This document shows, piece by piece, positions 19,817-48,885 of a DNA stretch of 64,000 nt (position 1 is its first letter; the number at the start of each line of letters is the position of its first letter). Where the stretch lies: NCBI GenBank assembly GCA_002104945.1, contig MCFH01000026.1:248001-312000 (forward strand). The letters run 5' to 3'. A program made the translations under genes and the position numbers. The notes beneath the pieces were generated by a model. The model was not told where the DNA came from, searched no databases, and saw only the letters and a list, made by a program, of their open reading frames with translations. This DNA comes from Piromyces finnis finn (Eukaryota; Fungi; Neocallimastigomycota).

Positions 19817-22453
19817 TTTATTAATTAGAAGATTTGAAAAGTAGTAAAAAAATTAATTTAAAATTGCCTTTAATAATTATTATATAATATATAAAATAAT
19901 ATAGAATAATGTTAAATAATTAATTTGATAAAAATATTGAAATTTATTTATGAAATATTTATATTTGTAACAATAAGAAAAATAGAATAATTCAAGCTAT
20001 TTAAATCAAGATATATATATTTATATTTATATTAGAAAGTAAAATATAATATCTAATATTAATTTAATTAAATTGTTTTTCAATTAAAAAAGTTTATTGT
20101 AAAAAAAGTTTATTTTAATTATTGATTATTGAATTTCTATATAAATAATATAATTATCTATTTATATAAACTTTTTTAAGATTTTTAATTTCTTAAAATT
20201 ATTTTACAAAAGAAAAAAAAAATTATATAAACATTTACATATAGTTTATAAAAAGAATTTTTTTTTTTTAAATATTAATATATTAACTTTATTTTTAATT
20301 ATTTGATTAGTATTATTTATTATAATAACGGTAAAAACTATATATATATTCTAATTTAATAATTACATTCAATATATTATCATATTCTAATTTATTTTTT
20401 ATATTACATCAATATATTATTTTGATTAATTATAAATTATTTTTACTCTGATTTGTGTAACATGTAATTTTCATCTATTTATATTTATAAATGACCATTA
20501 TTCATTTTACTTTGATAACTCACAACAAAACTTGACCATTATTATTTTAATATTCTTTTACTTTACATATTTATAATTTATAATAGATATTAATATTACC
20601 TTTTACTTTTAGCTTAGATTTTATTATATTACAATTAAATTCTTTAATATAATATTGAGGTGCTTTTATATTATTTAATTTTTTTTATTATAAATATAAA
20701 TTTGTTTTTTATTAAAAAAAAATTAAAAAATGAAAGGGCTTTATATTCTATTTATACTTTTTGAAGCAATAATAAAATATATTGTGAATATTCTGACATT
20801 TTAAGCTATTAACAATATTAAATAATTACAATGTTATAATTAAAAAATTAATCTATATATAATTAATATAATGAATACTTTTTAACAATTTTGTTATTTG
20901 TGCCAATCATGGTAAACATAAAATGTAATTTAGTGATATAAATGAAATTTAATATAAATTTTAGTTAGTCAAAATGAACAAAATAAAATTATTATATAAT
21001 TAATAATTTTATTGTATATTATATATTATATACATTGTTAATTATTAATTTTTCTAGTATTAATATATATAACTTTAATTAACAATGAAGTTATTATATT
21101 AACTTCCCTTTTAAATTTTTAGTTGTTATTATCATTATGATTTACTAGTAATAAGGTTATAATACATATAATAATTTAAATTTTTTCCGAAGATTTAATT
21201 ATTTTTTTAATATTTAAATAAGTTTTGTATAAATTAAGGTTCGTTGGTCAATGGAGGACTATTTCTATAAATTTCAAAAACAATATTAAATAAAATTATG
21301 AAAATATGGCCACTAATTTTTATTATTGAAATTTTAATGTGCCTAAAAGTTTTTACACAAAAAGTATATTGTTACGGCGCATATTACTAGGAATTTAGGA
21401 ATATTTAAAAATATTTCTTTTGAATAAATAAATATTATTTCTTATTTTATTTTTAATTTATTGTTATATATATATTATATAGTATAAAAACAGTTACTAC
21501 TGAATAACTCAACTGTAATAAAAAATTATATATAGGTAACAAAATTTATAATTATTAAATTATATTATAATATTTATATAAAAATAAACTTTTTTTTATT
21601 TTCCGTTAGAAAAGTATAAATAAATCAATTATTTTATATTAATGCTTTTATTATTTTTTTAATTGGTTGCATTCTCTTTCAATTCATAATCTAAATTTTT
21701 AACAAAATGAATAATTAATTAAAACTTCTATATAATAATATTTTATGCATTTATATTTATTTATTTAATGTATTAGATATTTTATGATCAAGTCACATAA
21801 TATTTTTAGCATATAAAAGATAAATTTTTATATTAATAATTATAATATTATATATAACACCAATACTATATAAATAAATATTTGTTTAAGAAGTTTATTT
21901 ATTATTTTATATTTATTTATTATTATTTATTTATTAATATTTATTATTATCATAATACAAGTATATAATAACGTCTTTTGTCTTTTCTTATGCATTTAAA
22001 AGAGCTACATTTTAATTATAGTAAAAATATGTATTTATATAATATTTATTAGTAGTTGCCAATTTAGGTTTTAAAATATTGTCAATTTTATTATTCAAAC
22101 TACATGTATTTATACATTTATATTGTGGCTTACATATCTATTCAAATATAATATATACAAATACGTTTCAATACATATGTCATAATGTTTTACATATTCT
22201 AACAATATTAAATAAAATACTTTTCATATAATTAATTTAATTAAAAATAAAAATAAAAATTAAATAATGTATTATTATATAATTAATAGTAGCATAGCAT
22301 ATTATAAAAATTATTTTTTTATATTTCAATAAATATTTTTATCTTTTTAAATAACTATTTTTAAATAATAAAATGTTTCATTATTGAAAAAAGTTATTTT
22401 TTTTTGATAAATTATATATAATTTTTCATACTGTATTAAAAAATAAATTTAAC

Positions 22454-27122: not shown

Positions 27123-27599
27123 CAAAAAAAAAAAAACTGTTCTTAATTAAAAATAAAAAAACATAAAATTAGCTCTTCTAATATAGCTTCTAAAATAGTT
27201 TTATTGGAAAGTTCTTAAAAAAAATTAGCATTTTTTTCAATTATTAGTTTTCTAAATAGTTATATAAAGTTGAAGGTCATTTAATTGAAACTCCATTCAT
27301 TATTATTTTGACCATGAACTGAGATTATTGGTAAAAATTCAATATAATTCATATTAATTAGGTCCAAAGAAACGAAAATTATGCCGTGAGGTAGGTACAG
27401 TATTGTTGTTCATTTTTTGAAGGGAACTTCTTATGAATATATAGATATTATAGTAAAAGATAAAGAAAATAAATAAAAAAATATAGTCCCTACCTGATAA
27501 ATTAAATGAAATAAAAAAGAAAAGTAACATCAGGAATGATAGTATGTTGTCCACTAAACTCTTCCATGAGCTCAAAATGTTTTCATTTGAAGAAATACT

Positions 27600-28979: not shown

Positions 28980-31900
28980 TTTTTTTTTTTTTTTTTTTTT
29001 TTTTAACGGCATCAAATATTATAAACTTTATTATTAATTTAATTAAAATTATAATACATGTAATAAAAAATTAAAAAATAAAAATAAAAATAAAAAAAAT
29101 ATGTTTAAATAAACACAAATGAATAAAAATTGGGTATAATGTATTCTAGTAATTTTAATTAAAGTAAGAAAGCCACTATCATACTAAAGTATAATAATTG
29201 TATTTGACTTCCAATGGGACACCGAGCCAAAGATCAAAATTTTGTCATGGAACAAAATTATGATCTCCATTGGTTGCGCTGGCCCTCCTGGCCTGTCTTA
29301 CTGTTTCTTCAGCATTGACGCTCTTGGATGTTGCTTCAAACCTTTTGAACATTGACCATTGCTGGCCAATAGCAAAAGGCATGATTTTGGTTAGAAGTTC
29401 CGCGGTTACCGTCAAGAATGGTGTTCCTTCGTTAGTATCAGATTGAATCTGACGCTTACAAAGTTCTTTCCATTCCCTTGAATTGTAATTAATATTGTTA
29501 AAACTTCTTCCCCCAAGAAGGAATTTAAATATTTTACTGCACACACTAGAATAATCATACACATTAATATTCACCGGATTATTAGAACTATTACTATCAT
29601 TAACTAAATTACTATCTAATTTAGAATTATTATCTTCACTATTGCTATCATTACTAGTATTATTATTTCTATTATTGTTATTATTACTATTGTTATTATT
29701 ACTATTTCTATTATTACTATTGTTACTATTACTATTGTTACTATTACTATTGTAATTATTATTACTACTATTGTTACTATTACTATTAATGTTATTGCTA
29801 TCTCTACTGATATTAACATTTTCATTATTATTGATAGGACTATTGGAATTACGTTGACTGAAAAAATTTAGTAGCTGGACTATGGAAACATAATATTTAA
29901 TACGGATATCTCTAAATGTTGGACAATCTAATAACCAATGTTTAATACTTTGATCTCCACACTTGCAACATGGACAGTAGTTAGGACAAACTGGATCAAC
30001 AAATTTAGCAGCTTTGGCAACTCTAGCATCCAACTTGTATCCGCTTCTTGCTTTCAATAGCCAGTAGAAGCCATAGGCAAACTCTGGGTACTCATAACAT
30101 AATTTAATAAAATCTTTAGTTTCAATAAATTTATTATCATCATAATATTGCGCTTTGATTGAATTCCCTTTGAGATCTTTCCAATAAAAGTTTTTAACTG
30201 CTTTAACATCTCCATGTTTCTTTAGTTTTTTATCAAGTGTCCTACTTGATTTGCACCACGTGTATTTTCTAAATTTAGGAATGTAATTGACAAGGTGTGA
30301 GATAATACAATTTGAGTTTTTCCATTTGTTAAAACATCTAACCTGAGCTAACGCACATTTGGCTGACAATGGAGGAATATTCAAATCTTTTGAAATAGAG
30401 TATAAAGAAATAAACGATACAGCTTTATGAACTCCGGCAACCCATCGTATTCCTTTGTTAACATGCTTCTGAGCAATTCTAGACCTGGCTTTGTTGGATC
30501 CAAGTAATGGTGCAAAGTATGAAACTCTGCTAATCACTTGTGAGTTAAGTACTAGCTTTTTGAAGGGAATAGGAATATTAGGATTTCTTAAGAATTTACT
30601 GACTGAAAAAAGTCCTTTCAAAACCTTGTTATTAAGAGCTTTAATAACTGGTTTAAGGGACAGATTCTTATCAAATGGAACACCAAGATAAGTATAGCAA
30701 TCAGTAGTTGGAATGGGTTGTCCTGCTAAGTAAAATGTTGGATCTCTCTTGTTCTGATTTTCTATTGATTCAGGACGAATCACCATCGTTGAACATTTCT
30801 GGATACCAAATTCCATTTCATTATACAATGCTCATTCATTAACTCTTCTAAGCATCTTTTTTAAGCATCCTCTTGTTGGAGCACAAATAACTATATCATC
30901 TGCAAAAAGTCCACCACAGCATCGAGTGTCACCTAAACTGACTCCAAGATCTTCGCACTCTTTAAATATATCATTAATAAAGAGATTAAAGAGAATAGGA
31001 GAAAGAGGGCATCCTTGACGGACTCCTTTCTTCACATCAAAAGATTTCGAGAATTGTCCATCTAATTTGACATTAGCCTTAGATGTTAAATATAAATTTT
31101 TGATGAATTGTAAACTCTTACCTCGGATTCCTAAACAATTTAATTTATGGAGAATATTACCGATTGGGACTGAATCGTATGCTTTCCTGAGATCTAAAAA
31201 GGCCAAATATGTCTCTTTATTATCTAATTGACGTCTACGGCATATTTCTTGGATTGAAATGAAAAGACTAATACTTTCTTCTTTTTTCGAAAACCAAATT
31301 GTTCAGGTCTAATGAAATTATTCTTTAGACCATATTCTGAGATTCTAGTTGTGACAATTTTGGAAATCAACTTAATACCATTATTGATAAGTGATATACC
31401 TCGATAGTTATCACAATCTGTCAAATCTCCCTTCTTAGGAATAGAAACAATACTGGATTCATTCCATGAGTTGGGGAAGTCTCCATCCCAAATACGGTTG
31501 AATAATTTAAGAATAAAATTTAAACCATGAGCATCATTATCTGAAGTAGTATTACCAGAAGAATTATTATCTGTAGCATTATTAGAATCATTACTTGATG
31601 GAATTAATGCTTTGTAAAATTCAATTGGAATACCATCCGGACCTGATGCTTTATAATTTGGAGTAGTGAGGATAGCTGACTTGACTTCATCAATACTAAT
31701 ATCTTGGTTGATATCCCACTCATCAAGCATAGGAAGTGAAAAACGTTTATTCATTGGTTCTTCATACCAATGCTCCAAACCAAGACTTACACCACTTGGA
31801 TCTGATGCAAGGTTTTCGAAATGATCTGGAATATTTTCATGATGGGAAACTTGTTGAAGATCTTGTTGAAGATCTTGTTGAAGATCGGATTGTTGATGAG

Positions 31901-33084
31901 ATTGTTGAACTGATTGTTGAAATGATTGTTGAATAGAATGTTGATGTTTATTAGAAACTAAAATTTTACGTTTGAGAGTGGAAAAAGTGTATTTGTGATT
32001 CCTTCTACTACGAGCTGAAAAGGAAATTGAGGTAACTGAAAGTTTCTTCTTTAACATGTGTAAGATTTTAATACAATCTTTCGATGAACCATGAACCTTG
32101 ACTAAGAAAAAGTGATCATTGAAAGTCTGAAAATATTTAACACTAATAACTGAATTAAATTTATCTTCTAGAATAACCTCGAGTTTTTCCCATAGCATAT
32201 TTACTGACCATGATCGAATACCACGGATAAAGAAGGAGCGAATATCATCTAAGGGGATACCATAAGACCGGGTACCACGTCTGATATAATTCTTGTCTTT
32301 AATATAAAGGACTGACATGATAATAAATTCTAATTAAAAAATATTGAATATAAAATAAATACTAATAAAAATTACAAATATAACGTATATGGAAAAAAAT
32401 CTGTCTCTCTCTCTCTTCTTAAAAGTACTGGATAGTACAAAAATTGTTACGATGCTTTGTTTAAAGTTTCTTTTTTTTGAATTCTAGTTGTAAATTTTCT
32501 TTAAAAATTCTAGTTTTGGTTTGTTGTTAGTAAATTCGATTCGCTTTTTGACACTAAAATTGTTTGACTTTACTTTTCATTAAATATTTAAATTGGTAAA
32601 AAATTTGAATCAAGAATGTTGACACCAGAAAGCTTGTGAATAGTATTTTTACATGATGTAGAGTGAATCAGTCTCTTACAAGAAACAATACAACAATAGC
32701 TACATGAATATAAAAATACAATGCAAATGCTAGAGTTGACTACATTGGATTCTTACAAGAGAAGAGTAGTACTACATGAATACATGAATAAAAGAAAAAA
32801 ATACAGCAACAAAATGTATTACTCTTCTAATTAAATACTATACAAACTTACCTGAGTATCAAACATTCAACTTATTCATCAAATACTTAAATTCGATGAA
32901 TAAAATGTTTTTTAATCGCTCAGTACCATGAGCTTAGTCCTAATAATTTTCCCTTAAAGACTAACCAAGCATCCATTGCGCAATACTTGGATTTAATTCT
33001 TTCTACTCTCTCAGTACCATGAGCATGAGTAGACCCCCTTGAGAAACTACATTTATTAAATAAATGAAGGGACGTTCCCAAGAG

Positions 33085-33086
<2 letters not shown>
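28980..33086 (-). mobile_element. LINE unit 1: both ends present, endonuclease deleted in-frame, two frameshifts
   Basis: Poly(A) at 28980-29004, ORF pieces 31224-32318, 30832-31206 and 29245-30828, fusion ENIPD|HFENL, one 5' module. Confidence 0.92.
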
Positions 33087-33123
<37 letters not shown>

Positions 33124-34439
33124 GGCATCAAATATTTTAAACTTTATTATTAATTTAATTAAAATTATAATACATGTAATATAAAAATTAAAATAAAATA
33201 AAAATAAAAAAAAATATGTTTAAATAACACAAATGAATAAAAATTGGGTATAATGTATTCTAGTAATTTTAATTAAAGTAAGAAAGCCACTATCATACTA
33301 AAGTATAATAATTGTATTTGACTTCCAATGGGACACCGAGCCAAAGATCAAAATTTTGTCATGGAACAAAATTATGATCTCCATTGGTTGCGCTGGCCCT
33401 CCTGGCCTGTCTTACTGTTTCTTCAGCATTGACGCTCTTGGATGTTGCTTCAAACCTTTTGAACATTGTCCATTGCTGGCCAATAGCAAAAGGCATGATT
33501 TTGGTTAGAAGTTCCGCGGTTACCGTCAAGAATGGTGTTCCTTCGTTAGTATCAGATTGAATCTGACGCTTACAAAGTTCTTTCCATTCCCTTGAATTGT
33601 AATTAATATTGTTAAAACTTCTTCCCCCAAGAAGGAATTTAAATATTTTACTGCACACACTAGAATAATCATACACATTAATATTCACCGGATTATTAGA
33701 ACTATTACTATCATTAACTAAATTACTATCTAATTTAGAATTATTATCTTCACTATTGTTATCATTACTAATATTATTATTTCTATTACTACTATTGTTA
33801 TTATTACTATTGTTACTATTACTATTGTTATTACTACTATTGTTACTATTACTATTAATGTTATTACTATCTCTACTGATATTAACATTTTCATTATTAT
33901 TGATAGGACTATTGGAATTACGTTGACTGAAAAAATTTAGTAGCTGGACTATGGAAACATAATATTTAATACGGATATCTCTAAATGTTGGACAATCTAA
34001 TAACCAATGTTTAATACTTTGATCTCCACACTTGCAACATGGACAGTAGTTAGGACAAACTGGATCAACAAATTTAGCAGCTTTGGCAACTCTAGCATCC
34101 AACTTGTATCCGCTTCTTGCTTTCAATAGCCAGTAGAAGCCATAGGCAAACTCTGGGTATTCATAACATAATTTAATAAAATCTTTAGTTTCAATAAATT
34201 TATTATCATCATAATATTGCGCTTTGATTGAATTCCCTTTGAGATCTTTCCAATAAAAGTTTTTTAATGCTTTAACATCTCCATGTTTCTTTAGTTTTTT
34301 ATCAAGTGTCCTACTTGATTTGCACCACGTGTATTTTCTAAATTTAGGAATGTAATTGACAAGGTGTGAGATAATACAATTTGAGTTTTTCCATTTGTTA
34401 AAACATCTAACCTGAGCTAATGCACATTTGGCTGACAAT

Positions 34440-34442
<3 letters not shown>
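33087..34442 (-). mobile_element. LINE unit 2: 5'-truncated (~1.35 kb)
   Basis: Poly(A), 3' UTR and the last ~360 codons, abutting the next poly(A). Confidence 0.93.
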
Positions 34443-34474
<32 letters not shown>

Positions 34475-34711
34475 GGCATCAAATATTTTAAACTTTATTA
34501 TTAATTTAATTAAAATTATAATACATGTAATAAAAAATTAAAAAATAAAAATAAAAATAAAAAAAATATGTTTAAATAAACACAAATGAATAAAATTTGG
34601 GTATAATGTATTCTAGTAATTTTAATTAAAGTAAGAAAGCCACTATCATACTAAAGTATAATAATTGTATTTGACTTCCAATGGGACACCGAGCCAAAGA
34701 TCAAAATTTTG

Positions 34712-37700
34712 TCATGGAATAAAATTATGATCTCCATTGGTTGCGCTGGCCCTCCTGGCCTGTCTTACTGTTTCTTCAGCATTGACGCTCTTGGATGTTG
34801 CTTCAAACCTTTTGAACATTGACCATTGCTGGCCAATAGCAAAAGGCATGATTTTGGTTAGAAGTTCCGCGGTTACCGTCAAGAATGGTGTTCCTTCGTT
34901 AGTATCAGATTGAATCTGACGCTTACAAAGTTCTTTCCATTCCCTTGAATTGTAATTAATATTGTTAAAACTTCTTCCCCCAAGAAGGAATTTAAATATT
35001 TTACTGCACACACTAGAATAATCATACACATTAATATTCACCGGATTATTAGAACTATTACTATCATTAACTAAATTACTATCTAAATTAGAATTATTAT
35101 CTTCACTATTGTTATCATTACTAATATTATTATTTCTATTATTGTTATTATTACTATTGTTACTATTACTATTGTTACTATTACTATTGTTATTACTACT
35201 ATTGTTACTATTACTATTAATGTTATTACTATCTCTACTGATATTATCAATTTCATTATTATTGATAGGACTATTGGAATTACGTTGACTGAAAAAATTT
35301 AATAGCTGGACTATAGAATCATAATGTTTAATACGGATATCTCTAAATGTTGGACAATCTAATAACCAATGTTTAATACTTTGATCTCCACACTTGCAAC
35401 ATGGACAGTAGTTAGGACAAACTGGATCAACAAATTTTGCAGCTTTGGCAACTCTAGCATCCAACTTGTATCTGCTTCTTGCTTTCAATAGCCAGTAGAA
35501 GCCATAGGCAAACTTTGGGTACTCATAACATAATTTAATAAAATCTTTAGTTTCAATAAATTTATTATCATCATAATATTGCGCTTTGATTGAATTCCCT
35601 TTGAGATCTTTCCAATAAAAGTTTTTAACTGCTTTAACATCTCCATGTTTCTTTAATTTTTTATCATGTGTCCTACTTGATTTGCACCACGTGTATTTTC
35701 TAAATTTAGGAATGTAATTGACAAGGTGTGAGATAATACAATTTGAGTTTTTCCATTTGTTAAAACATCTAACCTGAGCTAACGCACATTTGGCTGACAA
35801 TGGAGGAATATTCAAATCTTTTGAAATAGAGTATAAAGATATAAACGATACAGCTTTATGAACTCCGGCAACCCATCGTATTCCTTTGTTAACATGCTTC
35901 TGAGCAATCCTAGACCTAGCTTTGTTGGATCCAAGTAATGGTGAAAAGTATGAAACTCTGCTAATCACTTGAGAGTTAAGTACTAGTTTTTTGAAAGGAA
36001 TAGGAATATTAGGATTTCTTAAGAATTTACTGACTGAGAAAAGCCCTTTCAAAACCTTGTTATTAAGAGCTTTAATTACTGGTTTAAGGGACAGATTCTT
36101 ATCAAATGGAACACCAAGATAAGTATAGCAATCAGTAGTTGGAATGGGTTGTCCTGCTAAGTAAAATGTTGGATCTCTCTTGTTCTGATTTTCTATTGAT
36201 TCAGGACGAATCACCATCGTTGAACATTTCTGGATACCAAATTCCATTTCATTATACAATGCCCATTCATTAACTCTTCTAAGCATCTTTTTTAAGCATC
36301 CTCTTGTTGGAGCACAAATAACTATATCATCTGCAAAAAGTCCACCACAGCATCGAGTGTCACCTAAACTGACTCCAAGATCTTCGCACTCTTTAAATAT
36401 ATCATTAATAAAGAGATTAAAAAGAATAGGAGAAAGAGGGCATCCTTGACGGACTCCTTTCTTCACATCAAAAGATTTCGAGAATTGTCCATCTAATTTG
36501 ACATTAGCCTTAGATGTTAAATATAAATTTTTGATAAATTGTAGACTCTTACCTCGGATTCCTAAACAATCTAATTTATGGAGAATATTATCGATTGGGA
36601 CTGAATCGTATGCTTTCCTGAGATCTAAAAAGGCCAAATATGTCTCTTTATTATCTAATTGACGTCTACGGCATATTTCTTGGATTGAAATGAAAAGACT
36701 AATACTTTCTTCCTTTTTTCGAAAACCAAATTGTTCAGGTCTAATGAAATTATTCTTTAAACCATATTCTGAGATTCTAGTGGTGACAATTTTGGAAATC
36801 AACTTAATACCATTATTGATAAGTGATATACCTCGATAGTTATCACAATCTGTCAAATCTCCCTTCTTAGGAATAGAAACAATACTGGATTCATTCCATG
36901 AGTTGGGGAAGTCTCCATCCCAAATACGGTTGAATAATTTAAGAATAAAATTTAAACCATGAGCATCATTATCTGAAGTAGTATTACCAGAAGAATTATT
37001 ATCTGTAGCATTATTAGAATCATTACTTGATGGAACTAATGCTTTGTAAAATTCAATTGGAATACCATCCGGACCTGATGCTTTATAATTTGGAGTAGAG
37101 AGGATAGCTGACTTGACTTCATCAATACTAATATCTTGGTTGATATCCCACTCATCAAGCATAGGAAGTGAAAAACGTTTATTCATTGGTTCTTCATACC
37201 AATGTTCCAAATCAAGACTTACACCACTTGGATCTGATGCAAGATTTTCGAAATGATCATGCCACACATCTAGTTCTTCCGTAGCAACAACTAATTCTCC
37301 ATTTTTATTTTTAATTGGTTGAGCAATAAAGAAAGAATCTTTTCCAATTTTTGCAGTTTTCTTGATCCATTTCCAGGCCTTCTTAGGATTATGACTCTTC
37401 ATATACTCACATCCTGTTTTAATCCAATGAAGATATTCTTGCTTCCTAAATTCATTACATCTTTTGTGGATGTAATCAATGAGTTTACGGTAGATTTTAA
37501 TTCTTTTAATAAATTCATCTATATCATAAATTCTTTCTTTTTTAAATCTCTTATACAACTTCATTTTGATTTTTTGAAGATTAAAAATTTGTTGTGAAAT
37601 ATGAAATGAAGACTTTATAACATTATTTGCTGAAGTAATACTGAGCTCGTCTGCAATTGAAAAAGCAGTTGAAGTAAACTCTTTGGAAAGTTCATCTGTA

Positions 37701-39232
37701 GAAACATTAGGATCGTTGGATTTTGCTGAAAGTATTTGGAATTTATTATGACTGAGAATAGATTCCTTTTCCTCAATACATTTTAATCTATTCCATTTCA
37801 GAATTTTCTTAGGAACATTAAAGTCATTAGAAAAATCTTCCATAGGAATAATTTTACCATTAATAAGAAGTGGCTTATGGTCTGATACAGGATAAAAATT
37901 ATTTATAAATGATCCTGAATGAATAAGATCTTTCATCTTCAAATTGATAAGAGCATGGTCAATGTCGGAAGATTGATCACCTCGAGTCCAAGAGATAGTC
38001 GACCCTCTAAGCGGAAGAATTTCCCAATCTCCTAATCCATTAGTTGATAACCAATTGGATAATTTTACTTTAGACATATTAAAATCACCAACAAGAATCG
38101 ATGGATGGGATGAATGAGTTTGTAACCACAAGCGAACTTCTAACTTTGCATGATCAACATAGATGTTGTGATGACTATGAGGCATATAAACATTTCCAAT
38201 CGAGCATTTGAATCTATTCCAGAGACTAAAAGTATAAATAGAAATAATATACTTTCCAGAGAAGTTTTCAAGTGAAGCTTGACACGAATTGTGAAAACCT
38301 AAATATAAACCTCTCATTCCCGGAACTGATTCGTCAGCTTTCTTGAAAAAGTGTCTATAGTTTCGCAAAGTAACACGACAAGGATAATCTGTATTCGATC
38401 CAGAACCATTACCAGTTTCTTGGAAACATAAAAATAATGGTTTGAAAATAGCTGTGAAATAGCTAATACTATCTCTCTTTTCGTGATTCCACCCATTGGT
38501 GTTCCAACTAAGACAAAAAGAAAAGTTAACAGGCTTGTTGGATGAGGAAGAATCGTTGCTATTATTATTATTATTAAAGCCATCGTTATTAATGGATGAT
38601 GCATCAGAGGAATAAGTAGAACTATTACTAGATGGCTGTGAAACTGAAGAACTATCAACTATTGAACTGTTATCAGAGTTGATAGAGCTATTAGAATTAA
38701 TTGTTGAATGTTGAGATTGAAATTGTGTTTGCTGTAGATCTGGAATATTTTCATAAATGGAAACTTGTTGAAGATCTTGTTGAAGATCTAGTTGAGGATC
38801 GGATTGTTGATGAGATTGTTGAACTGATTGTTGAAATGATTGTTGAATAGAATGTTGATGTTTATTAGAAACTAAAATTTTACGTTTGAGAGTGGAAAAA
38901 GTGTATTTGTGATTCCTTCTACTACGAGCTGAAAAGGAAATTGAGGTAACTGAAAGTTTCTTCTTTAACATGTGTAAGATTTTAATACAATCTTTCGATG
39001 AACCATGAACCTTGACTAAGAAAAAGTGATCATTGAAAGTTTGAAAATATTTAACACTAATAACTGAATTAAATTTATCTTCTAGAATAACCTCGAGTTT
39101 TTCCCATAGCATATTTACTGACCATGATCGAATACCACGGATAAAGAAGGAGCGAATATCATCTAAGGGGATACCATAAGACCGGGTACCACGTCTGATA
39201 TAATTCTTGTCTTTAATATAAAGGACTGACAT
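34712..39232 (-). CDS. LINE polyprotein, 1506 aa: N-terminal domain + APE endonuclease + RT + CCHC zinc knuckle
   Basis: APE motifs SWNTNG, FQET, GDFN, SDIDH, SDH; RT motifs ASGPDG, YRGISL, LDLRKAYDSV, GVRQGCPLSP, FADD; CKCGDQSIKHWLLDC. Confidence 0.96.
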   Translation of the reverse strand: MSVLYIKDKNYIRRGTRSYGIPLDDIRSFFIRGIRSWSVNMLWEKLEVILEDKFNSVISVKYFQTFNDHFFLVKVHGSSKDCIKILHMLKKKLSVTSISFSARSRRNHKYTFSTLKRKILVSNKHQHSIQQSFQQSVQQSHQQSDPQLDLQQDLQQVSIYENIPDLQQTQFQSQHSTINSNSSINSDNSSIVDSSSVSQPSSNSSTYSSDASSINNDGFNNNNNSNDSSSSNKPVNFSFCLSWNTNGWNHEKRDSISYFTAIFKPLFLCFQETGNGSGSNTDYPCRVTLRNYRHFFKKADESVPGMRGLYLGFHNSCQASLENFSGKYIISIYTFSLWNRFKCSIGNVYMPHSHHNIYVDHAKLEVRLWLQTHSSHPSILVGDFNMSKVKLSNWLSTNGLGDWEILPLRGSTISWTRGDQSSDIDHALINLKMKDLIHSGSFINNFYPVSDHKPLLINGKIIPMEDFSNDFNVPKKILKWNRLKCIEEKESILSHNKFQILSAKSNDPNVSTDELSKEFTSTAFSIADELSITSANNVIKSSFHISQQIFNLQKIKMKLYKRFKKERIYDIDEFIKRIKIYRKLIDYIHKRCNEFRKQEYLHWIKTGCEYMKSHNPKKAWKWIKKTAKIGKDSFFIAQPIKNKNGELVVATEELDVWHDHFENLASDPSGVSLDLEHWYEEPMNKRFSLPMLDEWDINQDISIDEVKSAILSTPNYKASGPDGIPIEFYKALVPSSNDSNNATDNNSSGNTTSDNDAHGLNFILKLFNRIWDGDFPNSWNESSIVSIPKKGDLTDCDNYRGISLINNGIKLISKIVTTRISEYGLKNNFIRPEQFGFRKKEESISLFISIQEICRRRQLDNKETYLAFLDLRKAYDSVPIDNILHKLDCLGIRGKSLQFIKNLYLTSKANVKLDGQFSKSFDVKKGVRQGCPLSPILFNLFINDIFKECEDLGVSLGDTRCCGGLFADDIVICAPTRGCLKKMLRRVNEWALYNEMEFGIQKCSTMVIRPESIENQNKRDPTFYLAGQPIPTTDCYTYLGVPFDKNLSLKPVIKALNNKVLKGLFSVSKFLRNPNIPIPFKKLVLNSQVISRVSYFSPLLGSNKARSRIAQKHVNKGIRWVAGVHKAVSFISLYSISKDLNIPPLSAKCALAQVRCFNKWKNSNCIISHLVNYIPKFRKYTWCKSSRTHDKKLKKHGDVKAVKNFYWKDLKGNSIKAQYYDDNKFIETKDFIKLCYEYPKFAYGFYWLLKARSRYKLDARVAKAAKFVDPVCPNYCPCCKCGDQSIKHWLLDCPTFRDIRIKHYDSIVQLLNFFSQRNSNSPINNNEIDNISRDSNNINSNSNNSSNNNSNSNNSNSNNSNNNNNRNNNISNDNNSEDNNSNLDSNLVNDSNSSNNPVNINVYDYSSVCSKIFKFLLGGRSFNNINYNSREWKELCKRQIQSDTNEGTPFLTVTAELLTKIMPFAIGQQWSMFKRFEATSKSVNAEETVRQARRASATNGDHNFIP

Positions 39233-39877
39233 GATAATAAATTCTAATTAAAAATATTGAATATAAAATAAATACTAATAAAAATTATAAATATAACGTA
39301 TATGGAAAAAAAAATCTGTCTCTCTCTCTCTTCTTAAAAGTACTGGATAGTACAAAAATTGTTACGATGCTTTGTTTAAAGTTTCTTTTTTTTGAATTCT
39401 AGTTGTAAATTTTCTTTAAAAATTCTAGTTTTGGTTTGTTTTTAGTAAATTCGAATCGCTTTTTGACACTAAACTTGTTTGACTTTACTTTTCATTAAAT
39501 ATTTAAATTGGTAAAAAATTTGAATCAAGAATGTCGACACAAGAAAGCTTGTGAATAGTATTTTTACATGATGTAGAGTGAATCAGTCTCTTACAAGAAA
39601 CAATACAACAATAGCTACATGAATATAAAAATACAATGCAAATGCTAGAGTTGACTACATTGGATTCTTACAAGAGAAGAGTAGTACTACATGTATACAT
39701 GAATAAAAGAAAAAATACAGCAACAAAATGTATTATTCTTCTAATTAAATACTATACAAACTTACCTGAATATCAAACATTCAACTTATTCATCAAATAC
39801 TTAATTAGATGAATAAAATGTTTTTTAATCGCTCAGTACCATGAGCTTAGTCCTAATAATTTTCCCTTAAAGACTAA

Positions 39878-40127
39878 CCAAGCATCCATTGCGCAATGCT
39901 TGGATTTAATTCTTTCTACTCTCTCAGTACCATGAGCATGAGTAGACCCCCTTGAGAAACTACATTTATTAAATAAATGAAGGCACGTTCCCAAGAGGGA
40001 AGGGCACCAAGCATCCATTGCGCAATACTTGGATTTAATTCTTTCTACTCTCTCAGTACCATGAGCATGAGTAGACCCCTTGAGAAACTACATTTATTAA
40101 ATAAATGAAGGCACGTTCCCAAGAGGG
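39878..40127 (-). repeat. Tandem ~124-129 bp 5' modules of the LINE (also at 32965-33086, 48030-48227, 48329-48387)
   Basis: The unit ccaagcatcc...cccaagaggg repeats at 39878/40007 and 48030/48154. Confidence 0.9.
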
Positions 40128-40141
40128 ATATGAGCATGAGT

Positions 40142-40144
<3 letters not shown>

Positions 40145-40182
<38 letters not shown>

Positions 40183-42439
40183 GGCATCAAATATTTTAAA
40201 CTTTATTATTAATTTAATTAAAATTATAATACATGTAATAAAAAATTAAAAATAAATAAAAATAAAAAAAATATGTTTAAATAAACACAAATGAATAAAA
40301 ATTGGGTATAATGTATTCTAGTAATTTTAATTAAAGTAAGAAAGCCACTATCATACTAAAGTATAATAATTGTATTTGACTTCCAATGGGACACCGAGCC
40401 AAAGATCAAAATTTTGTCATGGAACAAAATTATGATCTCCATTGGTTGCGCTGGCCCTCCTGGCCTGTCTTACTGTTTCTTCAGCATTGACGCTCTTGGA
40501 TGTTGCTTCAAACCTTTTGAACATTGACCATTGCTGGCCAATAGCAAAAGGCATGATTTTGGTTAGAAGTTCCGCGGTTACCGTCAAGAATGGTGTTCCT
40601 TCATTAGTACCAGATTGAATCTGACGCTTACAAAGTTCTTTCCATTCCCTTGAATTGTAATTAATATTGTTAAAACTTCTTCCCCCAAGAAGGAATTTAA
40701 ATATTTTACTGCACACACTAGAATAATCATACACATTAATATTCACCGGATTATTAGAACTATTACTATCATTAACTAAATTACTATCTAAATTAGAATT
40801 ATTATCTTCACTATTGCTATCATTACTAATATTATTATTTCTATTACTACTATTGTTATTATTACTATTGTTACTATTACTATTGTTATTATTACTATTG
40901 TTACTATTACTATTAATATTATTACTATCTCTACTGATATTATCAATTTCATTATTATTGATAGGACTATTGGAATTACGTTGACTGAAAAAATTTAATA
41001 GCTGGACTATGGAATCATAATGTTTAATACGGATATCTCTAAATGTTGGACAATCTAATAACCAATGTTTAATACTTTGATCTCCACACTTGCAACATGG
41101 ACAGTAGTTAGGACAAACTGGATCAACAAATTTAGCAGCTTTGGCAACTCTAGCATCCAACTTGTATCCGCTTCTTGCTTTCAATAGCCAGTAGAAGCCA
41201 TAGGCAAACTCTGGGTACTCATAACATAATTTAATAAAATCTTTAGTTTCAATAAATTTATTATCATCATAATATTGCGCTTTGATTGAATTCCCTTTGA
41301 GATCTTTCCAATAAAAGTTTTTAACTGCTTTAACATCTCCATGTTTCTTTAATTTTTTATCATGTGTCCTACTTGATTTGCACCACGTGTATTTTCTAAA
41401 TTTAGGAATGTAATTGACAAGGTGTGAGATAATACAATTTGAGTTTTTCCATTTGTTAAAACATCTAACCTGAGCTAACGCACATTTGGCTGACAATGGA
41501 GGAATATTCAAATCTTTTGAAATAGAGTATAAAGATATAAACGATACAGCTTTATGAACTCCGGCAACCCATCGTATTCCTTTGTTAACATGCTTCTGAG
41601 CAATCCTAGACCTAGCTTTGTTGGATCCAAGTAATGGTGCAAAGTATGAAACTCTGCTAATCACTTGTGAGTTAAGTACTAGTTTTTTGAAAGGAATAGG
41701 AATATTAGGATTTCTTAAGAATTTACTGACTGAGAAAAGCCCTTTCAAAACCTTGTTATTAAGAGCTTTAATTACTGGTTTAAGGGACAGATTCTTATCA
41801 AATGGAACACCAAGATAAGTATAACAATCAGTAGTTGGAATGGGTTGTCCTGCTAAGTAAAATGTTGGATCTCTCTTGTTCTGATTTTCTATTGATTCAG
41901 GACGAATCACCATCGTTGAACATTTCTGGATACCAAATTCCATTTCATTATACAATGCCCATTCATTAACTCTTCTTAGCATCTTTTTTAAGCATCCTCT
42001 TGTTGGAGCACAAATAACTATATCATCTGCAAAAAGTCCACCACAGCATCGAGTGTCACCTAAACTGACTCCTAGATCTTCGCACTCTCTAAATATATCA
42101 TTAATAAAGAGATTAAAGAGAATAGGAGAAAGAGGGCAACCTTGACGGACTCCTTTCTTCACATCAAAAGATTTCGAGAATTGTCCATCTAATTTGACAT
42201 TAGCCTTAGATGTTAAATATAAATTTTTGATAAATTGTAAACTCTTACCTCGGATTCCTAAACAATCTAATTTATGGAGAATATTACCGATTGGGACTGA
42301 ATCGTATGCTTTCCTGAGATCTAAAAAGGCCAAATATGTCTCTTTATTATCTAATTGACGTCTACGGCATATTTCTTGGATTGAAATGAAAAGACTAATA
42401 CTTTCTTCTTTTTTTCGAAAACCAAATTGTTCAGGTCTA
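40145..42439 (-). mobile_element. LINE unit 4: 5'-truncated within RT
   Basis: Poly(A), 3' UTR and ORF 40417-42333, with a T-run frameshift near 42410. Confidence 0.93.
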
Positions 42440-42587
42440 GTAAGAAAGCCACTATCATACTAAAGTATAATAATTGTATTTGACTTCCAATGGGCACCGA
42501 GCCAAAGATCAAAATTTTGTCATGGAACAAAATTATGATCTCCATTGGTTGCGCTGGCCCTCCTGGCCTGTCTTACTGTTTCATCAG

Positions 42588-42589
<2 letters not shown>
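42440..42589 (-). mobile_element. LINE unit 5: 150-bp internal fragment with no poly(A)
   Basis: Matches the ORF end and proximal 3' UTR only, fused directly to unit 4. Confidence 0.85.
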
Positions 42590-42621
<32 letters not shown>

Positions 42622-45600
42622 GGCATCAAATATTTTAAACTTTATTATTAATTTAATTAAAATTATAATACATGAAATATAAAAATTAAAATAAAATAAA
42701 AATAAAAAAAATATGTTTAAATAAACACAAATGAATAAAAATTGGGTATAATGTATTCTAGTAATTTTAATTAAAGTAAGAAAGCCACTATCATACTAAA
42801 GTATAATAATTGTATTTGACTTCCAATGGGACACCGAGCCAAAGATCAAAATTTTATCATGGGACAAAATTATGATCTCCATTGGTTGCGCTGGCCCTCC
42901 TGGCCTGTCTTACTGTTTCTTCAGCATTGACGCTCTTGGATGTTGCTTCAAACCTTTTGAACATTGACCATTGCTGGCCAATAGCAAAAGGCATGATTTT
43001 GGTTAGAAGTTCCGCGGTTACCGTCAAGAATGGTGTTCCTTCATTAGTACCAGATTGAATCTGACGCTTACAAAGTTCTTTCCATTCCCTTGAATTGTAA
43101 TTGATATTGTTAAAACTTCTTCCCCCAAGAAGGAATTTAAATATTTTACTGCACACACTAGAATAATCATACACATTAATATTCACCGGATTATTAGAAC
43201 TATTACTATCATTAACTAAATTACTATCTAAATTAGAATTATTATCTTCACTATTGTTATCATTACTAATATTATTATTTCTATTACTACTATTGTTATT
43301 ATTACTATTGTTACTATTACTATTGTTATTATTACTATTGTTACTATTACTATTAATATTATTACTATCTCTACTGATATTATCAATTTCATTATTATTG
43401 ATAGGACTATTGGAATTACGTTGACTGAAAAAATTTAGTAGCTGGACTATGGAATCATAATGTTTAATACGGATATCTCTAAATGTTGGACAATCTAATA
43501 ACCAATGTTTAATACTTTGATCTCCACACTTGCAACATGGACAGTAGTTAGGACAAACTGGATCAACAAATTTAGCAGCTTTGGCAACTCTAGCATCCAA
43601 CTTGTATCCGTTTCTTGCTTTCAATAGCCAGTAGAAGCCATAGGCAAACTCTGGGTACTCATAACATAATTTAATAAAATCTTTAGTTTCAATAAATTTA
43701 TTATCATCATAATATTGCGCTTTGATTGAATTCCCTTTGAGATCTTTCCAATAAAAGTTTTTAACTGCTTTAACATCTCCATGTTTCTTTAATTTTTTAT
43801 CAAGTGTCCTACTTGATTTGCACCACGTGTATTTTCTAAATTTAGGAATGTAATTGACAAGGTGTGAGATAATACAATTTGAGTTTTTCCATTTGTTAAA
43901 ACATCTAACCTGAGCTAACGCACATTTGGCTGACAATGGAGGAATATTCAAATCTTTTGAAATAGAGTATAAAGATATAAACGATACAGCTTTATGAACT
44001 CCGGCAACCCATCGTATTCCTTTGTTAACATGCTTCTGAGCAATTCTAGACCTGGCTTTGTTGGATCCAAGTAATGGTGCAAAGTATGAAACTCTGCTAA
44101 TCACTTGTGAGTTAAGTACTAGCTTTTTGAAGGGAATAGGAATATTAGGATTTCTTAAGAATTTACTGACTGAAAAAAGCCCTTTCAAAACCTTGTTATT
44201 AAGAGCTTTAATAACTGGTTTAAGGGACAGATTCTTATCAAATGGAACACCAAGATAAGTATAACAATCAGTAGTTGGAATGGGTTGTCCTGCTAAGTAA
44301 AATGTTGGATCTCTCTTGTTCTGATTTTCTATTGATTCAGGACGAATCACCATCGTTGAACATTTCTGGATACCAAATTCCATTTCATTATACAAGGCCC
44401 ATTCATTAACTCTTCTAAGCATCTTTTTTAAGCATCCTCTTGTTGGAGCACAAATAACTATATCATCTGCAAAAAGTCCACCACAGCATCGAGTGTCACC
44501 TAAACTGACTCCGAGATCTTCACACTCTTTAAATATATCATTAATAAAGAGATTAAAGAGAATAGGAGAAAGAGGGCATCCTTGACGGACTCCTTTCTTC
44601 ACATCAAAAGATTTCGAGAATTGTCCATCTAATTTGACATTAGCCTTAGATGTTAAATATAAATTTTTGATGAATTGTAAACTCTTACCTCGGATTCCTA
44701 AACAATCTAATTTATGGAGAATATTACCGATTGGGACTGAATCGTATGCTTTCCTGAGATCTAAAAAGGCCAAATATGTCTCTTTATTATCTAATTGACG
44801 TCTACGGCATATTTCTTGGATTGAAATGAAAAGACTGATACTTTCTTCCTTTTTTCGAAAACCAAATTGTTCAGGTCTAATGAAATTATTCTTTAGACCA
44901 TATTCTGAGATTCTAGTGGTGACAATTTTGGAAATCAACTTAATACCATTATTGATAAGTGATATACCTCGATAGTTATCACAATCTGTCAAATCTCCCT
45001 TCTTAGGAATAGAAACAATACTGGATTCATTCCATGAGTTGGGGAAGTCTCCATCCCAAATACGGTTGTATAATTTAAGAATAAAATTTAAACCATAAGC
45101 ATCATTATCTGAAGTGGTATTACCGGAAGAATTATTATCTGTAGCATTATTAGAATCATTACTTGATGGAATTAATGCTTTGTAAAATTCAATTGGAATA
45201 CCATCCGGACCTGATGCTTTATAATTCGGAGTAGAGAGGATAGCTGACTTGACTTCATCAATACTAATATCTTGGTTGATATCCCATTCATCAAGCATAG
45301 GGAGTGAAAAACGTTTATTCGTTGGTTCTTCATACCAATGCTCCAAATCAAGACTTACGCCACTTGGATCTGATGCAAGATTTTCGAAATGATCATGCCA
45401 CACATCTAGTTGTTCTTCCGTAGCAACAACTAATTCTCCATTTTTATTTTTAATTGGTTGAGCAATAAAGAAAGAATCTTTTCCAATTTTTGCAGTTTTC
45501 TTGATCCATTTCCAGGCCTTCTTAGGATTATGACTCTTCATATACTCACATCCTGTTTTAATCCAATGAAGATATTCTTGTTTCCTAAATTCATTACATC

Positions 45601-48224
45601 TTTTGTGGATGTAATCAATGAGCTTACGGTAGATTTTAATTCTTTTAATAAATTCATCTATATCATAAATTCTTTCTTTTTTAAATCTCTTATACAACTT
45701 CATTTTGATTTTTTGGAGATTAAAAATTTGTTGTGAAATATGAAATGAAGACTTTATAACATTATTTGCTGAGGTAATACTGAGCTCGTCTGCAATTGAA
45801 AAAGCAGTTGAAGTAAATTCTTTGGAAAGATCATCTGTAGAAACATTAGGATCGTTGAATTTTGCTGAAAGTATTTGGAATTTATTATGACTGAGAATAG
45901 ATTCCTTTTCCTCAATACATTTTAATCTATTCCATTTCAGAATTTTCTTAGGAACGTTAAAGTCATTAGAAAAATCTTCCATAGGAATAATTTTACCATT
46001 AATAAGAAGTGGCTTATGGTCTGATACAGGATAAAAATTATTTATAAATGATCCTGAGTGAATAAGATCTTTCATCTTCGAATTGATAAGAGCATGGTCA
46101 ATGTCGGAAGATTGTTCACCTCGAGTCCAAGAGATAGTAGACCCTCTAAGCGGAAGAATTTCCCAATCTCCTAATCCATTAGTTGATAACCAGTTGGATA
46201 ATTTTACTTTAGACATATTAAAATCACCAACAAGAATCGATGGATGGGATGAATGAGTTTGTAACCACAAGCGAACTTCTAACTTTGCATGATCAACATA
46301 GATGTTGTGATGACTATGAGGCATATAAACATTTCCAATCGAGCATTTGAATCTATTCCAGAGACTAAAAGTATAAATAGAAATAATATACTTTCCAGAG
46401 AAGTTTTCAAGTGAGGCTTGACACGAATTGTGAAAACCTAAATATAAACCTCTCATTCCCGGAACTGATTCGTCAGCTTTCTTGAAAAAGTGTCTATAGT
46501 TTCGCAAAGTAACACGACAAGGATAATCTGTATTCGATCCAGAACCATTACCAGTTTCTTGGAAACATAAGAATAATGGTTTGAAAATAGCTGTGAAATA
46601 GCTAATACTATCTCTCTTTTCATGATTCCACCCATTGGTGTTCCAACTAAGACAAAAAGAAAAGTTATCAGGCTTGTTGGATGAGGAAGAATCGTTGCTA
46701 TTATTATTATTATTAAAGCCATCGTTATTAATGGATGATGCATCAGAGGAATAAGTAGAACTATTACTAGATGGCTGTGAAACTGAAGAACTATCAACTA
46801 TTGAACTGTTATCAGAGTTGATAGAACTATTAGAATTAATTGTTGAATGTTGAGATTGAAATTGTGTTTGCTGTAGATCTGGAATATTTTCATGATGGGA
46901 AACTTGTTGAAGATCCTGTTGAAGATCTCGTTGAAGATCGGATTGTTGATGAGATTGTTGAACTGATTGTTGAACTGATTGTTGAAATGATTGTTGAATA
47001 GAATGTTGATGTTTATTAGAAACTAAAATTTTACGTTTGAGAGTGGAAAAAGTGTATTTGTGATTCCTTCTACTACGAGCTGAAAAGGAAATTGAGGTAA
47101 CTGAAAGTTTCTTCTTTAACATGTGTAAGATTTTAATACAATCTTTTGATGAACCATGAACCTTGACTAAGAAAAAGTGATCATTGAAAGTTTGAAAATA
47201 TTTAACACTAATAACTGAATTAAATTTATCTTCTAGAATAACCTCGAGTTTTTCCCATAGCATATTTACTGACCATGATCGAATACCACGGATAAAGAAG
47301 GAGCGAATATCATCTAAGGGGATACCATAAGACCGGGTACCACGTCTGATATAATTCTTATCTTTAATATAAAGGACTGACATGATAATAAATTCTAATT
47401 AAAAAATATTGAATATAAAATAAATACTAATAAAAATTACAAATATAACGTATATGGAAAAAAATCTGTCTCTCTCTCTCTTCTTAAAAGTACTGGATAG
47501 TACAAAAATTGTTACGATGCTTTGTTTAAAGTTTCTTATTTTTTGAATTCTAGTTGTAAATTTTCTTTAAAAATTCTAGTTTTGGTTTGTTGTTAGTAAA
47601 TTCGATTCGCTTTTTGACACTAAACTTGTTTGACTTTACTTTTCATTAAATATTTAAATTGGTAAAAAATTTGAATCAAGAATGTCGACACCAGAAAGCT
47701 TGTGAATAGTATTTTTACATGATGTAGAGTGAATCAGTCTCTTACAAGAAACAATACAACAATAGCTACATGAATATAAAAGTACAATGCAAATGCTAAA
47801 GTTGACTACATTGGATTCTTACAAGAGAAGAGTAGTACTACATGTATACATGAATAAAAGAAAAAATACAGCAACAAAATGTATTATTCTTCTAATTAAA
47901 TACTATACAAACTTACCTGAAAAATCAAACATTCACTTATTCATCAAATACTTAAATTTGATGAATAAAATGTTTTTTAATCGCTCAGTACCATGAGCTT
48001 AGTCCTAATAATTTTCCCTTGAAGACTAACCAAGCATCCATTGCGCAATGCTTGGATTTAATTCTTTCTACTCTCTCAGTACCATGAGCATGAGTAGACC
48101 CCCTTGAGAAATTACATTTATTAAATAAATGAAGGCACATTCCTAAGAGGGCACCAAGCATCCATTGCGCAATACTTGGATTTAATTCTTTCTACTCTCT
48201 CAGTACCATGAGCATGAGTAGACC

Positions 48225-48227
<3 letters not shown>
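42590..48227 (-). mobile_element. LINE unit 6: full-length
   Basis: Poly(A), intact ORF 42857-47383, 5' UTR and ~1.6 5' modules. Confidence 0.95.
42857..47383 (-). CDS. LINE polyprotein, 1508 aa (APE-RT-CCHC)
   Basis: Near-identical to 34712-39232, with scattered substitutions and small indels in low-complexity linkers. Confidence 0.96.
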   Translation of the reverse strand: MSVLYIKDKNYIRRGTRSYGIPLDDIRSFFIRGIRSWSVNMLWEKLEVILEDKFNSVISVKYFQTFNDHFFLVKVHGSSKDCIKILHMLKKKLSVTSISFSARSRRNHKYTFSTLKRKILVSNKHQHSIQQSFQQSVQQSVQQSHQQSDLQRDLQQDLQQVSHHENIPDLQQTQFQSQHSTINSNSSINSDNSSIVDSSSVSQPSSNSSTYSSDASSINNDGFNNNNNSNDSSSSNKPDNFSFCLSWNTNGWNHEKRDSISYFTAIFKPLFLCFQETGNGSGSNTDYPCRVTLRNYRHFFKKADESVPGMRGLYLGFHNSCQASLENFSGKYIISIYTFSLWNRFKCSIGNVYMPHSHHNIYVDHAKLEVRLWLQTHSSHPSILVGDFNMSKVKLSNWLSTNGLGDWEILPLRGSTISWTRGEQSSDIDHALINSKMKDLIHSGSFINNFYPVSDHKPLLINGKIIPMEDFSNDFNVPKKILKWNRLKCIEEKESILSHNKFQILSAKFNDPNVSTDDLSKEFTSTAFSIADELSITSANNVIKSSFHISQQIFNLQKIKMKLYKRFKKERIYDIDEFIKRIKIYRKLIDYIHKRCNEFRKQEYLHWIKTGCEYMKSHNPKKAWKWIKKTAKIGKDSFFIAQPIKNKNGELVVATEEQLDVWHDHFENLASDPSGVSLDLEHWYEEPTNKRFSLPMLDEWDINQDISIDEVKSAILSTPNYKASGPDGIPIEFYKALIPSSNDSNNATDNNSSGNTTSDNDAYGLNFILKLYNRIWDGDFPNSWNESSIVSIPKKGDLTDCDNYRGISLINNGIKLISKIVTTRISEYGLKNNFIRPEQFGFRKKEESISLFISIQEICRRRQLDNKETYLAFLDLRKAYDSVPIGNILHKLDCLGIRGKSLQFIKNLYLTSKANVKLDGQFSKSFDVKKGVRQGCPLSPILFNLFINDIFKECEDLGVSLGDTRCCGGLFADDIVICAPTRGCLKKMLRRVNEWALYNEMEFGIQKCSTMVIRPESIENQNKRDPTFYLAGQPIPTTDCYTYLGVPFDKNLSLKPVIKALNNKVLKGLFSVSKFLRNPNIPIPFKKLVLNSQVISRVSYFAPLLGSNKARSRIAQKHVNKGIRWVAGVHKAVSFISLYSISKDLNIPPLSAKCALAQVRCFNKWKNSNCIISHLVNYIPKFRKYTWCKSSRTLDKKLKKHGDVKAVKNFYWKDLKGNSIKAQYYDDNKFIETKDFIKLCYEYPEFAYGFYWLLKARNGYKLDARVAKAAKFVDPVCPNYCPCCKCGDQSIKHWLLDCPTFRDIRIKHYDSIVQLLNFFSQRNSNSPINNNEIDNISRDSNNINSNSNNSNNNNSNSNNSNNNNSSNRNNNISNDNNSEDNNSNLDSNLVNDSNSSNNPVNINVYDYSSVCSKIFKFLLGGRSFNNINYNSREWKELCKRQIQSGTNEGTPFLTVTAELLTKIMPFAIGQQWSMFKRFEATSKSVNAEETVRQARRASATNGDHNFVP

Positions 48228-48262
<35 letters not shown>

Positions 48263-48418
48263 GGCATCAAATATTTTAAACTTTATTATTAATTTAATTA
48301 AAATTATAATACATGTAATAAAAAATTAAGTAGACCCCCTTGAGAAACTACATTTATTAAATAAATGAAGGCACGTTCCCAAGAGGGCTTCATCAGCATT
48401 GACGCTTTCCCAAGAGGG
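48228..48418 (-). mobile_element. LINE unit 7: mini-element and mosaic 5' junction
   Basis: Poly(A) + 69 bp of 3' end + 59 bp of 5' module + 19 bp ORF fragment + 12 bp of 5' terminus. Confidence 0.8.
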
Positions 48419-48468
48419 TAACTGTAAAGCTGTTAAAAAAAAAAAAAAGGTAAAAATTTTAAAAATAT

Positions 48469-48549
48469 TGACTAAGGTGGGATTCGAACCCACGCCACAT
48501 GTGTGACCAGGGCCTAAACCTGACGCGTTAACCTCTCCGCCACTTAGCC
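48469..48549 (-). tRNA. tRNA-Leu(TAG)
   Basis: GGCTAAG/CTTAGTC-A stem, anticodon arm TCAGG-TTTAGGC-CCTGG, long variable arm, GGTTCGAATCC T-loop, and a T5 terminator just downstream. Confidence 0.95.
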
Positions 48550-48885
48550 AATTATATTTATATTCTTGAAGAGTCAATAATATAAAATTATTATTTTTGG
48601 ATATTTACCAATTAGATACCATACATCCTTAAAATAAAAAACTTTAAATCCATTACTCTACTTAAACAATACACACAAATTAAAAATTAAAAAATCATAA
48701 ATTATTGTTTAATAAAATTTTATTAAATAAAAAAATTTAGTATGTATAATACAAGATATGAAATAGTCTATGATATATATAAACAAGATTTATTCTTTTC
48801 ATTAAATAAGTAACTATATATAACTTATTATGGAAATAGAATCGAAATAAAATTAAAAAATGTTAAAAATAGTAATTCATTGAAT

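Follow-up and report, generated by a model that had tools for sequence, protein, structure and literature searches.

The 64,000-nucleotide (nt) window analysed here, positions 248,001 to 312,000 of Piromyces finnis contig MCFH01000026.1 (assembly GCA_002104945.1), is very AT-rich (GC 13-33 %) and carries three transfer RNA (tRNA) genes according to ARAGORN. One of them, an intact tRNA-Leu with anticodon TAG at 48468-48550 on the minus strand (Rfam RF00005, 58.8 bits), is followed directly downstream by a large block of long interspersed nuclear element (LINE) copies. All LINE-coding sequence that tblastn detects in the window falls into this single block, which extends from ~27.3 to 48.4 kb on the minus strand. 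The sequence-only reading that drew attention to the locus had described a head-to-tail array of seven units, all co-oriented with the tRNA gene and without visible target-site duplications (TSDs). The block is real, and all copies do share the minus strand with tRNA-Leu, but it is a nest of copies inserted into one another rather than a TSD-free array.

The main family in the block is an L1-like, APE-type LINE of ~5.7 kb, an assignment based on its reverse transcriptase and APE endonuclease domains, poly(A) ends, variable 5' truncation and TSDs. Following the direction of transcription away from the tRNA gene, a 33-nt host spacer (48435-48467, minus strand, like all features of the block) contains the T-runs of the RNA polymerase III (Pol III) terminator (T5, T5 and T14). 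The first LINE-derived base lies at 48434, 33 nt past the tRNA. The 5'-most terminus had been placed at 48418, and that position does lie 49-50 nt from the tRNA end, but LINE-derived sequence begins earlier. This earliest piece, P1 (48420-48434), is a 15-mer matching internal sequence of a second LINE family. It is followed by P2 (48409-48419), an A plus CCCTCTTGGG, the 10 nt with which a full-length copy begins at its 5' end; the same terminus, found at 48387 in the block, recurs in public-run contigs. A 20-nt 5' stub of a copy that we call V (or U2), derived from the 3' region of the open reading frame (ORF), occupies 48389-48408, and an extra G plus a 58-nt 5' stub of the full-length copy E1, consisting of 5' monomer sequence, occupy 48330-48388. 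Next comes M (48228-48329), the last 70 nt of the LINE with a tail of 32 A.

The larger copies lie beyond these short pieces. The remainder of E1 (42590-48227, tail A29) is full length with an intact ORF of 1508 amino acids (42857-47383), and U3 (34443-40144, tail A29) is likewise full length with an intact ORF of 1506 amino acids (34712-39232), so that the two intact ORFs noticed earlier are borne out. Between them lies the remainder of V (40145-42589, tail A35), in which a 151-nt piece spanning the ORF end and 3' untranslated region (UTR) (42589-42439) is joined at 42439 to a copy 5'-truncated ~2.3 kb from its 3' end. U4 (33087-34442, tail A34) is 5'-truncated ~1.35 kb from its 3' end, and U5 (28980-33086, tail A25) has the canonical 5' terminus, a 1.5-kb internal deletion and frameshifts. 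The block does not stop at 28980, as had been thought, but goes on with U6 (28979 to about 27484), a 5'-truncated copy of the second family (35-49 % amino acid identity) that is frameshifted, carries a premature TAG and lacks a clear poly(A). A possible further fragment at 27263-27402 is weak; it has 70 % identity to the 5' region of L015, a relative of the U6 family.

Six 3' ends of the main family can be counted, with copy bodies ending at 48260, 42619, 40180, 34472, 33121 and 29005 and tails of 32, 29, 35, 29, 34 and 25 A, respectively. As the earlier reading had it, every one of these tails follows GATGCCGTT, with AATAAA 22 nt upstream. The supposed seventh unit is probably the tail-less 151-nt piece at 42589-42439 that is fused to the next copy.

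Contrary to the earlier impression that no TSD was visible, at least two nested insertions, and probably a third, are bordered by duplications of 10-12 nt, and the members of these are arranged in mirrored pairs, like brackets: CCCTCTTGGG at 48418 and 33086, AATGCTGATGAA at 48400 and 42591, and (AA)GGGGGTCTAC at 48341 and 48229. In the outermost of these events (C), P2 is the upstream TSD copy, so that the (A)CCCTCTTGGG ahead of the V stub reappears beyond the U4 tail, where it forms the beginning of U5 (33077-33087). In event D, AATGCTGATGAA forms the last 12 nt of the V stub, ahead of E1, and its partner stands at 42580-42591, past the E1 tail; this 12-mer occurs at only two places on the minus strand, and its GAT variant is found in no other copy. 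In event E, the 10-12 nt of (AA)GGGGGTCTAC that end the E1 stub ahead of M reappear just past the tail of M. Removing M and one TSD copy in silico yields a canonical 5' monomer that is 125/126 identical to that of U5, and removing E1 with one TSD copy restores a V that is 97/100 identical to U3. The three mirrored pairs and the clean excisions show that the block is a Russian-doll nest and not an end-to-end, TSD-free array. An end-to-end addition without target duplication, as in the HeT-A/TART-like arrays to which the block had been compared, is not supported.

Judged from these duplications, the order from youngest to oldest reads as M into E1, E1 into V, and the block V-U3-U4 into U5; the oldest step would have placed U5, perhaps with U6, beside or within a second-family copy that was already present. 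The number of integrations at tRNA-Leu thus appears to be no fewer than three and is probably five. Inserted DNA begins, on its 5' side, 33, 48, 59, 79 and 138 nt past the tRNA end, and the 5' stubs that newcomers cut off from residents measure 10-58 nt. The targets are of four kinds, namely the ORF of the second family, the 5' terminus of the main family, the start of a truncated copy and a monomer, and the TSD sequences are unrelated apart from a leading A or AA, which provides a primer ending in T, as is expected in target-primed reverse transcription. What the insertion points have in common is how far they lie from the tRNA gene and how they are oriented to it, not their target sequence. 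For the randomly chosen LINE DNA of a 5-21 kb block, we estimate the joint chance of three hits within 140 nt of its proximal edge at ~1e-6.

On these grounds, we consider it likely that the LINE integrated repeatedly downstream of tRNA-Leu, in the orientation of the tRNA, and that older copies were pushed outward. Each newcomer would land in the first 10-58 nt of the copy residing beside the tRNA gene, leaving a short 5' stub in place while the rest of the resident moves away, and the product would resemble a head-to-tail array. Most probably, the insertion window is defined by the transcription complex that Pol III forms with TFIIIC/TFIIIB at the tRNA gene; such a landmark is suggested by the lack of relatedness among the target sequences and by analogy with the TRE elements of Dictyostelium. 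In addition, the reverse transcriptase may leave one RNA and resume at the poly(A) end of a second, so that several copies would be deposited per integration.

The last step of this model concerns the junctions A35/U3, A29/U4 and A25/U6 and the joint at 42439 within V, all of which were searched for TSDs, and none was found. The 42439 joint is non-homologous, and we infer that it arose by a template switch. The TSD-less junctions are most likely one-event concatemers made by template jumping of the reverse transcriptase, a reading favoured by the single TSD pair that encloses V-U3-U4, the switch-like joint within V and the six uniform, complete tails. Later insertions into A-tails, with TSDs consisting of A only, are a possible alternative, yet such insertions should leave short and long remnants, and the uniform 25-35 A point to complete rather than split RNA tails. 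Repeated blunt insertion at exactly one bond is another possible source of the same junctions. Junctions of poly(A) with a truncated LINE in the same orientation also occur in contigs from related fungi (L011, L019, L022, L024, L033 and L080), among which no opposite-orientation junctions were seen, so the phenomenon is not peculiar to this assembly.

Truncation and decay add some detail to the history of the block. Four different 5' truncation points are found among the copies. U6 begins (28979) at the same reverse transcriptase position, within ~2 nt, as the second unit of contig L019 (L019:5145), and the V stub (48408) and the second unit of L024 (L024:5079) both begin at '(A)AGCGTC' near the ORF end. 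These coincidences suggest that truncation points recurring across families and species are hot spots at which reverse transcriptase stops or jumps, or else that they reflect sub-length RNAs. Copies differ, as had been noted, by truncation point and by single-nucleotide polymorphisms (SNPs), which amount to 0.8-2 % between copies; private substitutions per 2260 nt number 10 in E1, 3 in V, 11 in U3 and 13 in U5. These differences probably reflect different source copies. The expectation that divergence would rise with distance from the tRNA finds no support at the nucleotide level and holds only for coding decay, which follows the nesting order and is worst in the outermost copies, U5 (the 1.5-kb deletion and frameshifts) and U6 (frameshifts and a stop).

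The locus could also have been built by a LINE that targets its own sequence or its poly(A) tails, with the tRNA gene merely marking where the founder landed. Zepp of Chlorella and Cnl1 of Cryptococcus nest in their own copies in the same orientation and form long, LINE-only clusters. Self-targeting of this kind would account for the fact that all reconstructed targets but the first are LINE DNA, that three junctions consist of poly(A) followed directly by a copy, and that in the genome's own contigs the canonical 5' terminus of 48387 is joined to several internal LINE positions. It sits poorly with the TSD-defined points, all of which fall within 10-58 nt of the resident's tRNA-proximal edge despite the 5-21 kb of LINE DNA on offer, a clustering to which the ~1e-6 estimated above applies if sites are chosen uniformly. 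The targets are moreover unrelated, one of the four being the start of a truncated copy that lacks the 5' repeat; the tails are unbroken; and the founder lies 33 nt past the tRNA in matching orientation. Insertion points spread within older copies, as expected of a Zepp- or Cnl1-like element, are not seen here, and nothing interrupts the 5.6-kb bodies of E1 and U3. We therefore regard self-targeting as unlikely, and the data at the tRNA-Leu locus favour tRNA-anchored targeting over it.

Two further explanations dispense with repeated retrotransposition at this site. A build-up at the DNA level, through unequal crossing-over, segmental duplication or gene conversion among a few copies, might explain why neighbours share variants (E1 and V differ by 0.76 %, U4 and U5 by 1.1 %) and why the 15-mer shared by U6 and P1 is duplicated in register with U6. 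It has little to say about the truncation point, complete poly(A) and private SNPs that each copy has of its own, and recombination would give in-register joints, whereas TSDs and clean excisions are signatures of insertion; we consider this scenario very improbable and already largely refuted by the TSD pairs and the in-silico excisions. Least credible is an assembly artefact in which near-identical copies were put together in the wrong order or number. Copies share 98-99 % identity, and the abundance of the family is extreme (summed word depth ~2000x that of unique flank in public-run contigs), conditions under which such errors could arise. Copy-specific truncations and SNPs and properly nested TSD pairs are nevertheless not expected from a collapse or chimeric join, and metagenome assemblies made independently for relatives contain similar junctions.

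Several observations weigh against repeated, tRNA-anchored integration. The analysis covers one locus only, and no LINE lies downstream of either of the window's other two tRNA genes. At the nucleotide level, divergence forms no gradient, be it with nesting order or with distance from the tRNA, and the three TSD-less junctions (A35/U3, A29/U4 and A25/U6) require the extra assumption of template jumping or one of its alternatives. Joints in public-run contigs, which are short Logan contigs broken at A-runs, point to nesting within other LINE copies as well, and this could mean self-targeting. A scan for tRNAs and B boxes in contigs of related proteins and in 78 metagenome loci turned up a single odd tRNA-like gene, in L023, and no normal tRNA gene in the 78 related metagenome contigs, an uninformative result given that these contigs are 1-10 kb long and end in repeat. 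The origin of P1 is also left unexplained by the nest model. The 15-mer is identical to L015 at 15/15 positions and to U6 at 14/15 (27794-27780, ~1.2 kb inside U6), where the U6 copy has a C-to-T change that creates an in-frame TAG. It may be either a stub of the oldest resident, with its TSD, or templated filler. An assignment of P1 to the ORF of the main family was rejected, as the DNA mismatches there and matches the U6 family.

The single ORF of the element, of 1506-1508 amino acids, encodes a reverse transcriptase of LINE type (PF00078, RVT_1, E = 1e-35), for which the closest solved structure in the PDB is human L1 ORF2p (E = 8e-33). Residues 228-480 match the APE endonuclease family PF03372 (Exo_endo_phos) at 31.7 bits against a cut-off of 24.5; D387, N389 and D455-H456 (the SDH motif) are invariant in the protein alignment. 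A CCHC knuckle is present in the same ORF. At the N-terminus, residues 26-102 (window positions 47078-47308, minus strand) are predicted to fold as beta-alpha-beta-beta-alpha-beta with a pLDDT of ~90, and a fold search with this domain returned generic ferredoxin-like matches only. The ferredoxin/RRM-like domain is conserved and fused to the APE-reverse transcriptase protein, without a separate ORF1, and is a candidate for a module that binds RNA or serves in targeting.

Upstream of the ORF, the 0.85-kb 5' region has no minus-strand ORF of at least 100 amino acids. The 5' UTR starts with one to three structured monomers of ~124 nt, a unit that folds into three hairpins (-42.7 kcal/mol, z = -4.1) and is located on the minus strand at 32962-33086, 48103-48227 and 39877-40127; U5 has one monomer, and E1 and U3 have two or more. 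The monomer may be a promoter or processing element; when the 5' region was scanned against Rfam, neither a ribozyme nor any other known family came up besides tRNA. In the 5' UTR of full-length copies, the motif CAG|GTAAGT at ~47910-47925 (minus strand; U5 counterpart at ~32850) could, from its sequence, be a splice donor.

Named relatives of the LINE protein come from Neocallimastigomycota only (Orpinomyces). The LINE (42701-48300) reaches a high word depth in contigs from RNA runs of the same organism and also turns up, at 95-99 % identity, in independent metagenomes from animal guts. Together with the Orpinomyces relative, its presence in gut-metagenome runs marks the host as an anaerobic gut fungus. 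An exact-sequence lookup of the window ORF on public contigs gave no record.

The closest behavioural parallel is TRE3 of Dictyostelium, which inserts 40-150 bp downstream of tRNA genes, matching them in orientation. The comparison, already drawn from sequence alone, gains substance from the separate integrations reconstructed via TSDs: at this single tRNA gene, three to five events all fall 33-138 nt downstream in the orientation of the tRNA. TRE3 (TRE3-A to -D) and the fungal LINE both combine APE, reverse transcriptase and a zinc knuckle with a poly(A) tail, and both inhabit AT-rich host genomes in which transposable elements pile up at tRNA genes. The host here is a fungus rather than an amoebozoan, and the element has a single long ORF whose N-terminal domain is RRM-like, whereas TRE3 has two overlapping ORFs with ORF2 expressed via a -1 frameshift, a family trait that the fungal LINE does not show. 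Its 5' UTR is also built from the ~124-nt monomers, and no external B box was identified. We would thus call the fungal LINE TRE3-like by its behaviour at this locus, a likeness drawn from insertion position and orientation and not from sequence relationship.

Other known systems resemble the locus in part. Zepp and Cnl1 share the same-orientation nesting in older copies, but their clusters are subtelomeric and without tRNA anchoring, whereas here the reconstructed points all lie at the tRNA-proximal edge. HeT-A, TART and TAHRE of Drosophila likewise form LINE arrays in one orientation, matched here by the head-to-tail appearance of the block; these elements are added to the chromosome end without target duplication, while the present block is internal, has TSDs and stands beside a tRNA gene. 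Yeast Ty3 and Ty1 and Dictyostelium DGLT-A and TRE5 are also aimed at Pol III-transcribed genes, but they integrate upstream of the tRNA gene, and the Ty elements and DGLT-A are long terminal repeat (LTR) elements with an integrase.

The downstream-of-tRNA habit has so far been described for TRE3, a LINE, and Skipper-2, an LTR element, of social amoebae, and insertion downstream of tRNA genes is regarded as dictyostelid-only (PMC5911963; PMC5006619). Our full-text literature search brought up no paper that deals with tRNA-associated LINEs of Neocallimastigomycota and none describing such behaviour in fungi, and the pairing of 'non-LTR retrotransposon' with 'downstream of tRNA genes' led to Dictyostelium only. 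An even chance seems fair for the wider proposition that gut fungi (Neocallimastigomycota) independently evolved a Dictyostelium-like habit of parking at tRNA genes, in which a single-ORF LINE would read the Pol III complex, perhaps via its RRM-like domain or APE, and insert 30-140 nt downstream of tRNA genes at whose upstream side LTR elements reportedly occupy fixed sites, while reverse transcriptase jumping would deposit head-to-tail copies. If true, the fungal LINE would represent a second, independent origin of downstream-of-tRNA integration and lend weight to the notion that Pol III genes are safe havens to which AT-rich genomes drive their retroelements. A second system would then exist for asking which Pol III factor a LINE recognises 3' of a tRNA gene, a question unsettled for TRE3, and the habit would account for a large share of the repeat structure in poorly annotated gut-fungus genomes. 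In any case, apparent LINE 'arrays' should not be called tandem until they have been searched for stubs and nested TSDs.

Two side observations concern other tRNA genes. The downstream flanks of tRNA-Cys (17451-18100, plus strand) and tRNA-Ala (21800-22452, minus strand) in the window are plain AT-rich DNA and look unoccupied. In the metagenome contig L023, a LINE 3' end is immediately followed by the odd tRNA-like gene mentioned above (L023:4597-4671), which contains a B box and to which ARAGORN could assign no anticodon, and then by a copia-like reverse transcriptase; this tRNA-like gene may be the head of a short interspersed nuclear element (SINE).

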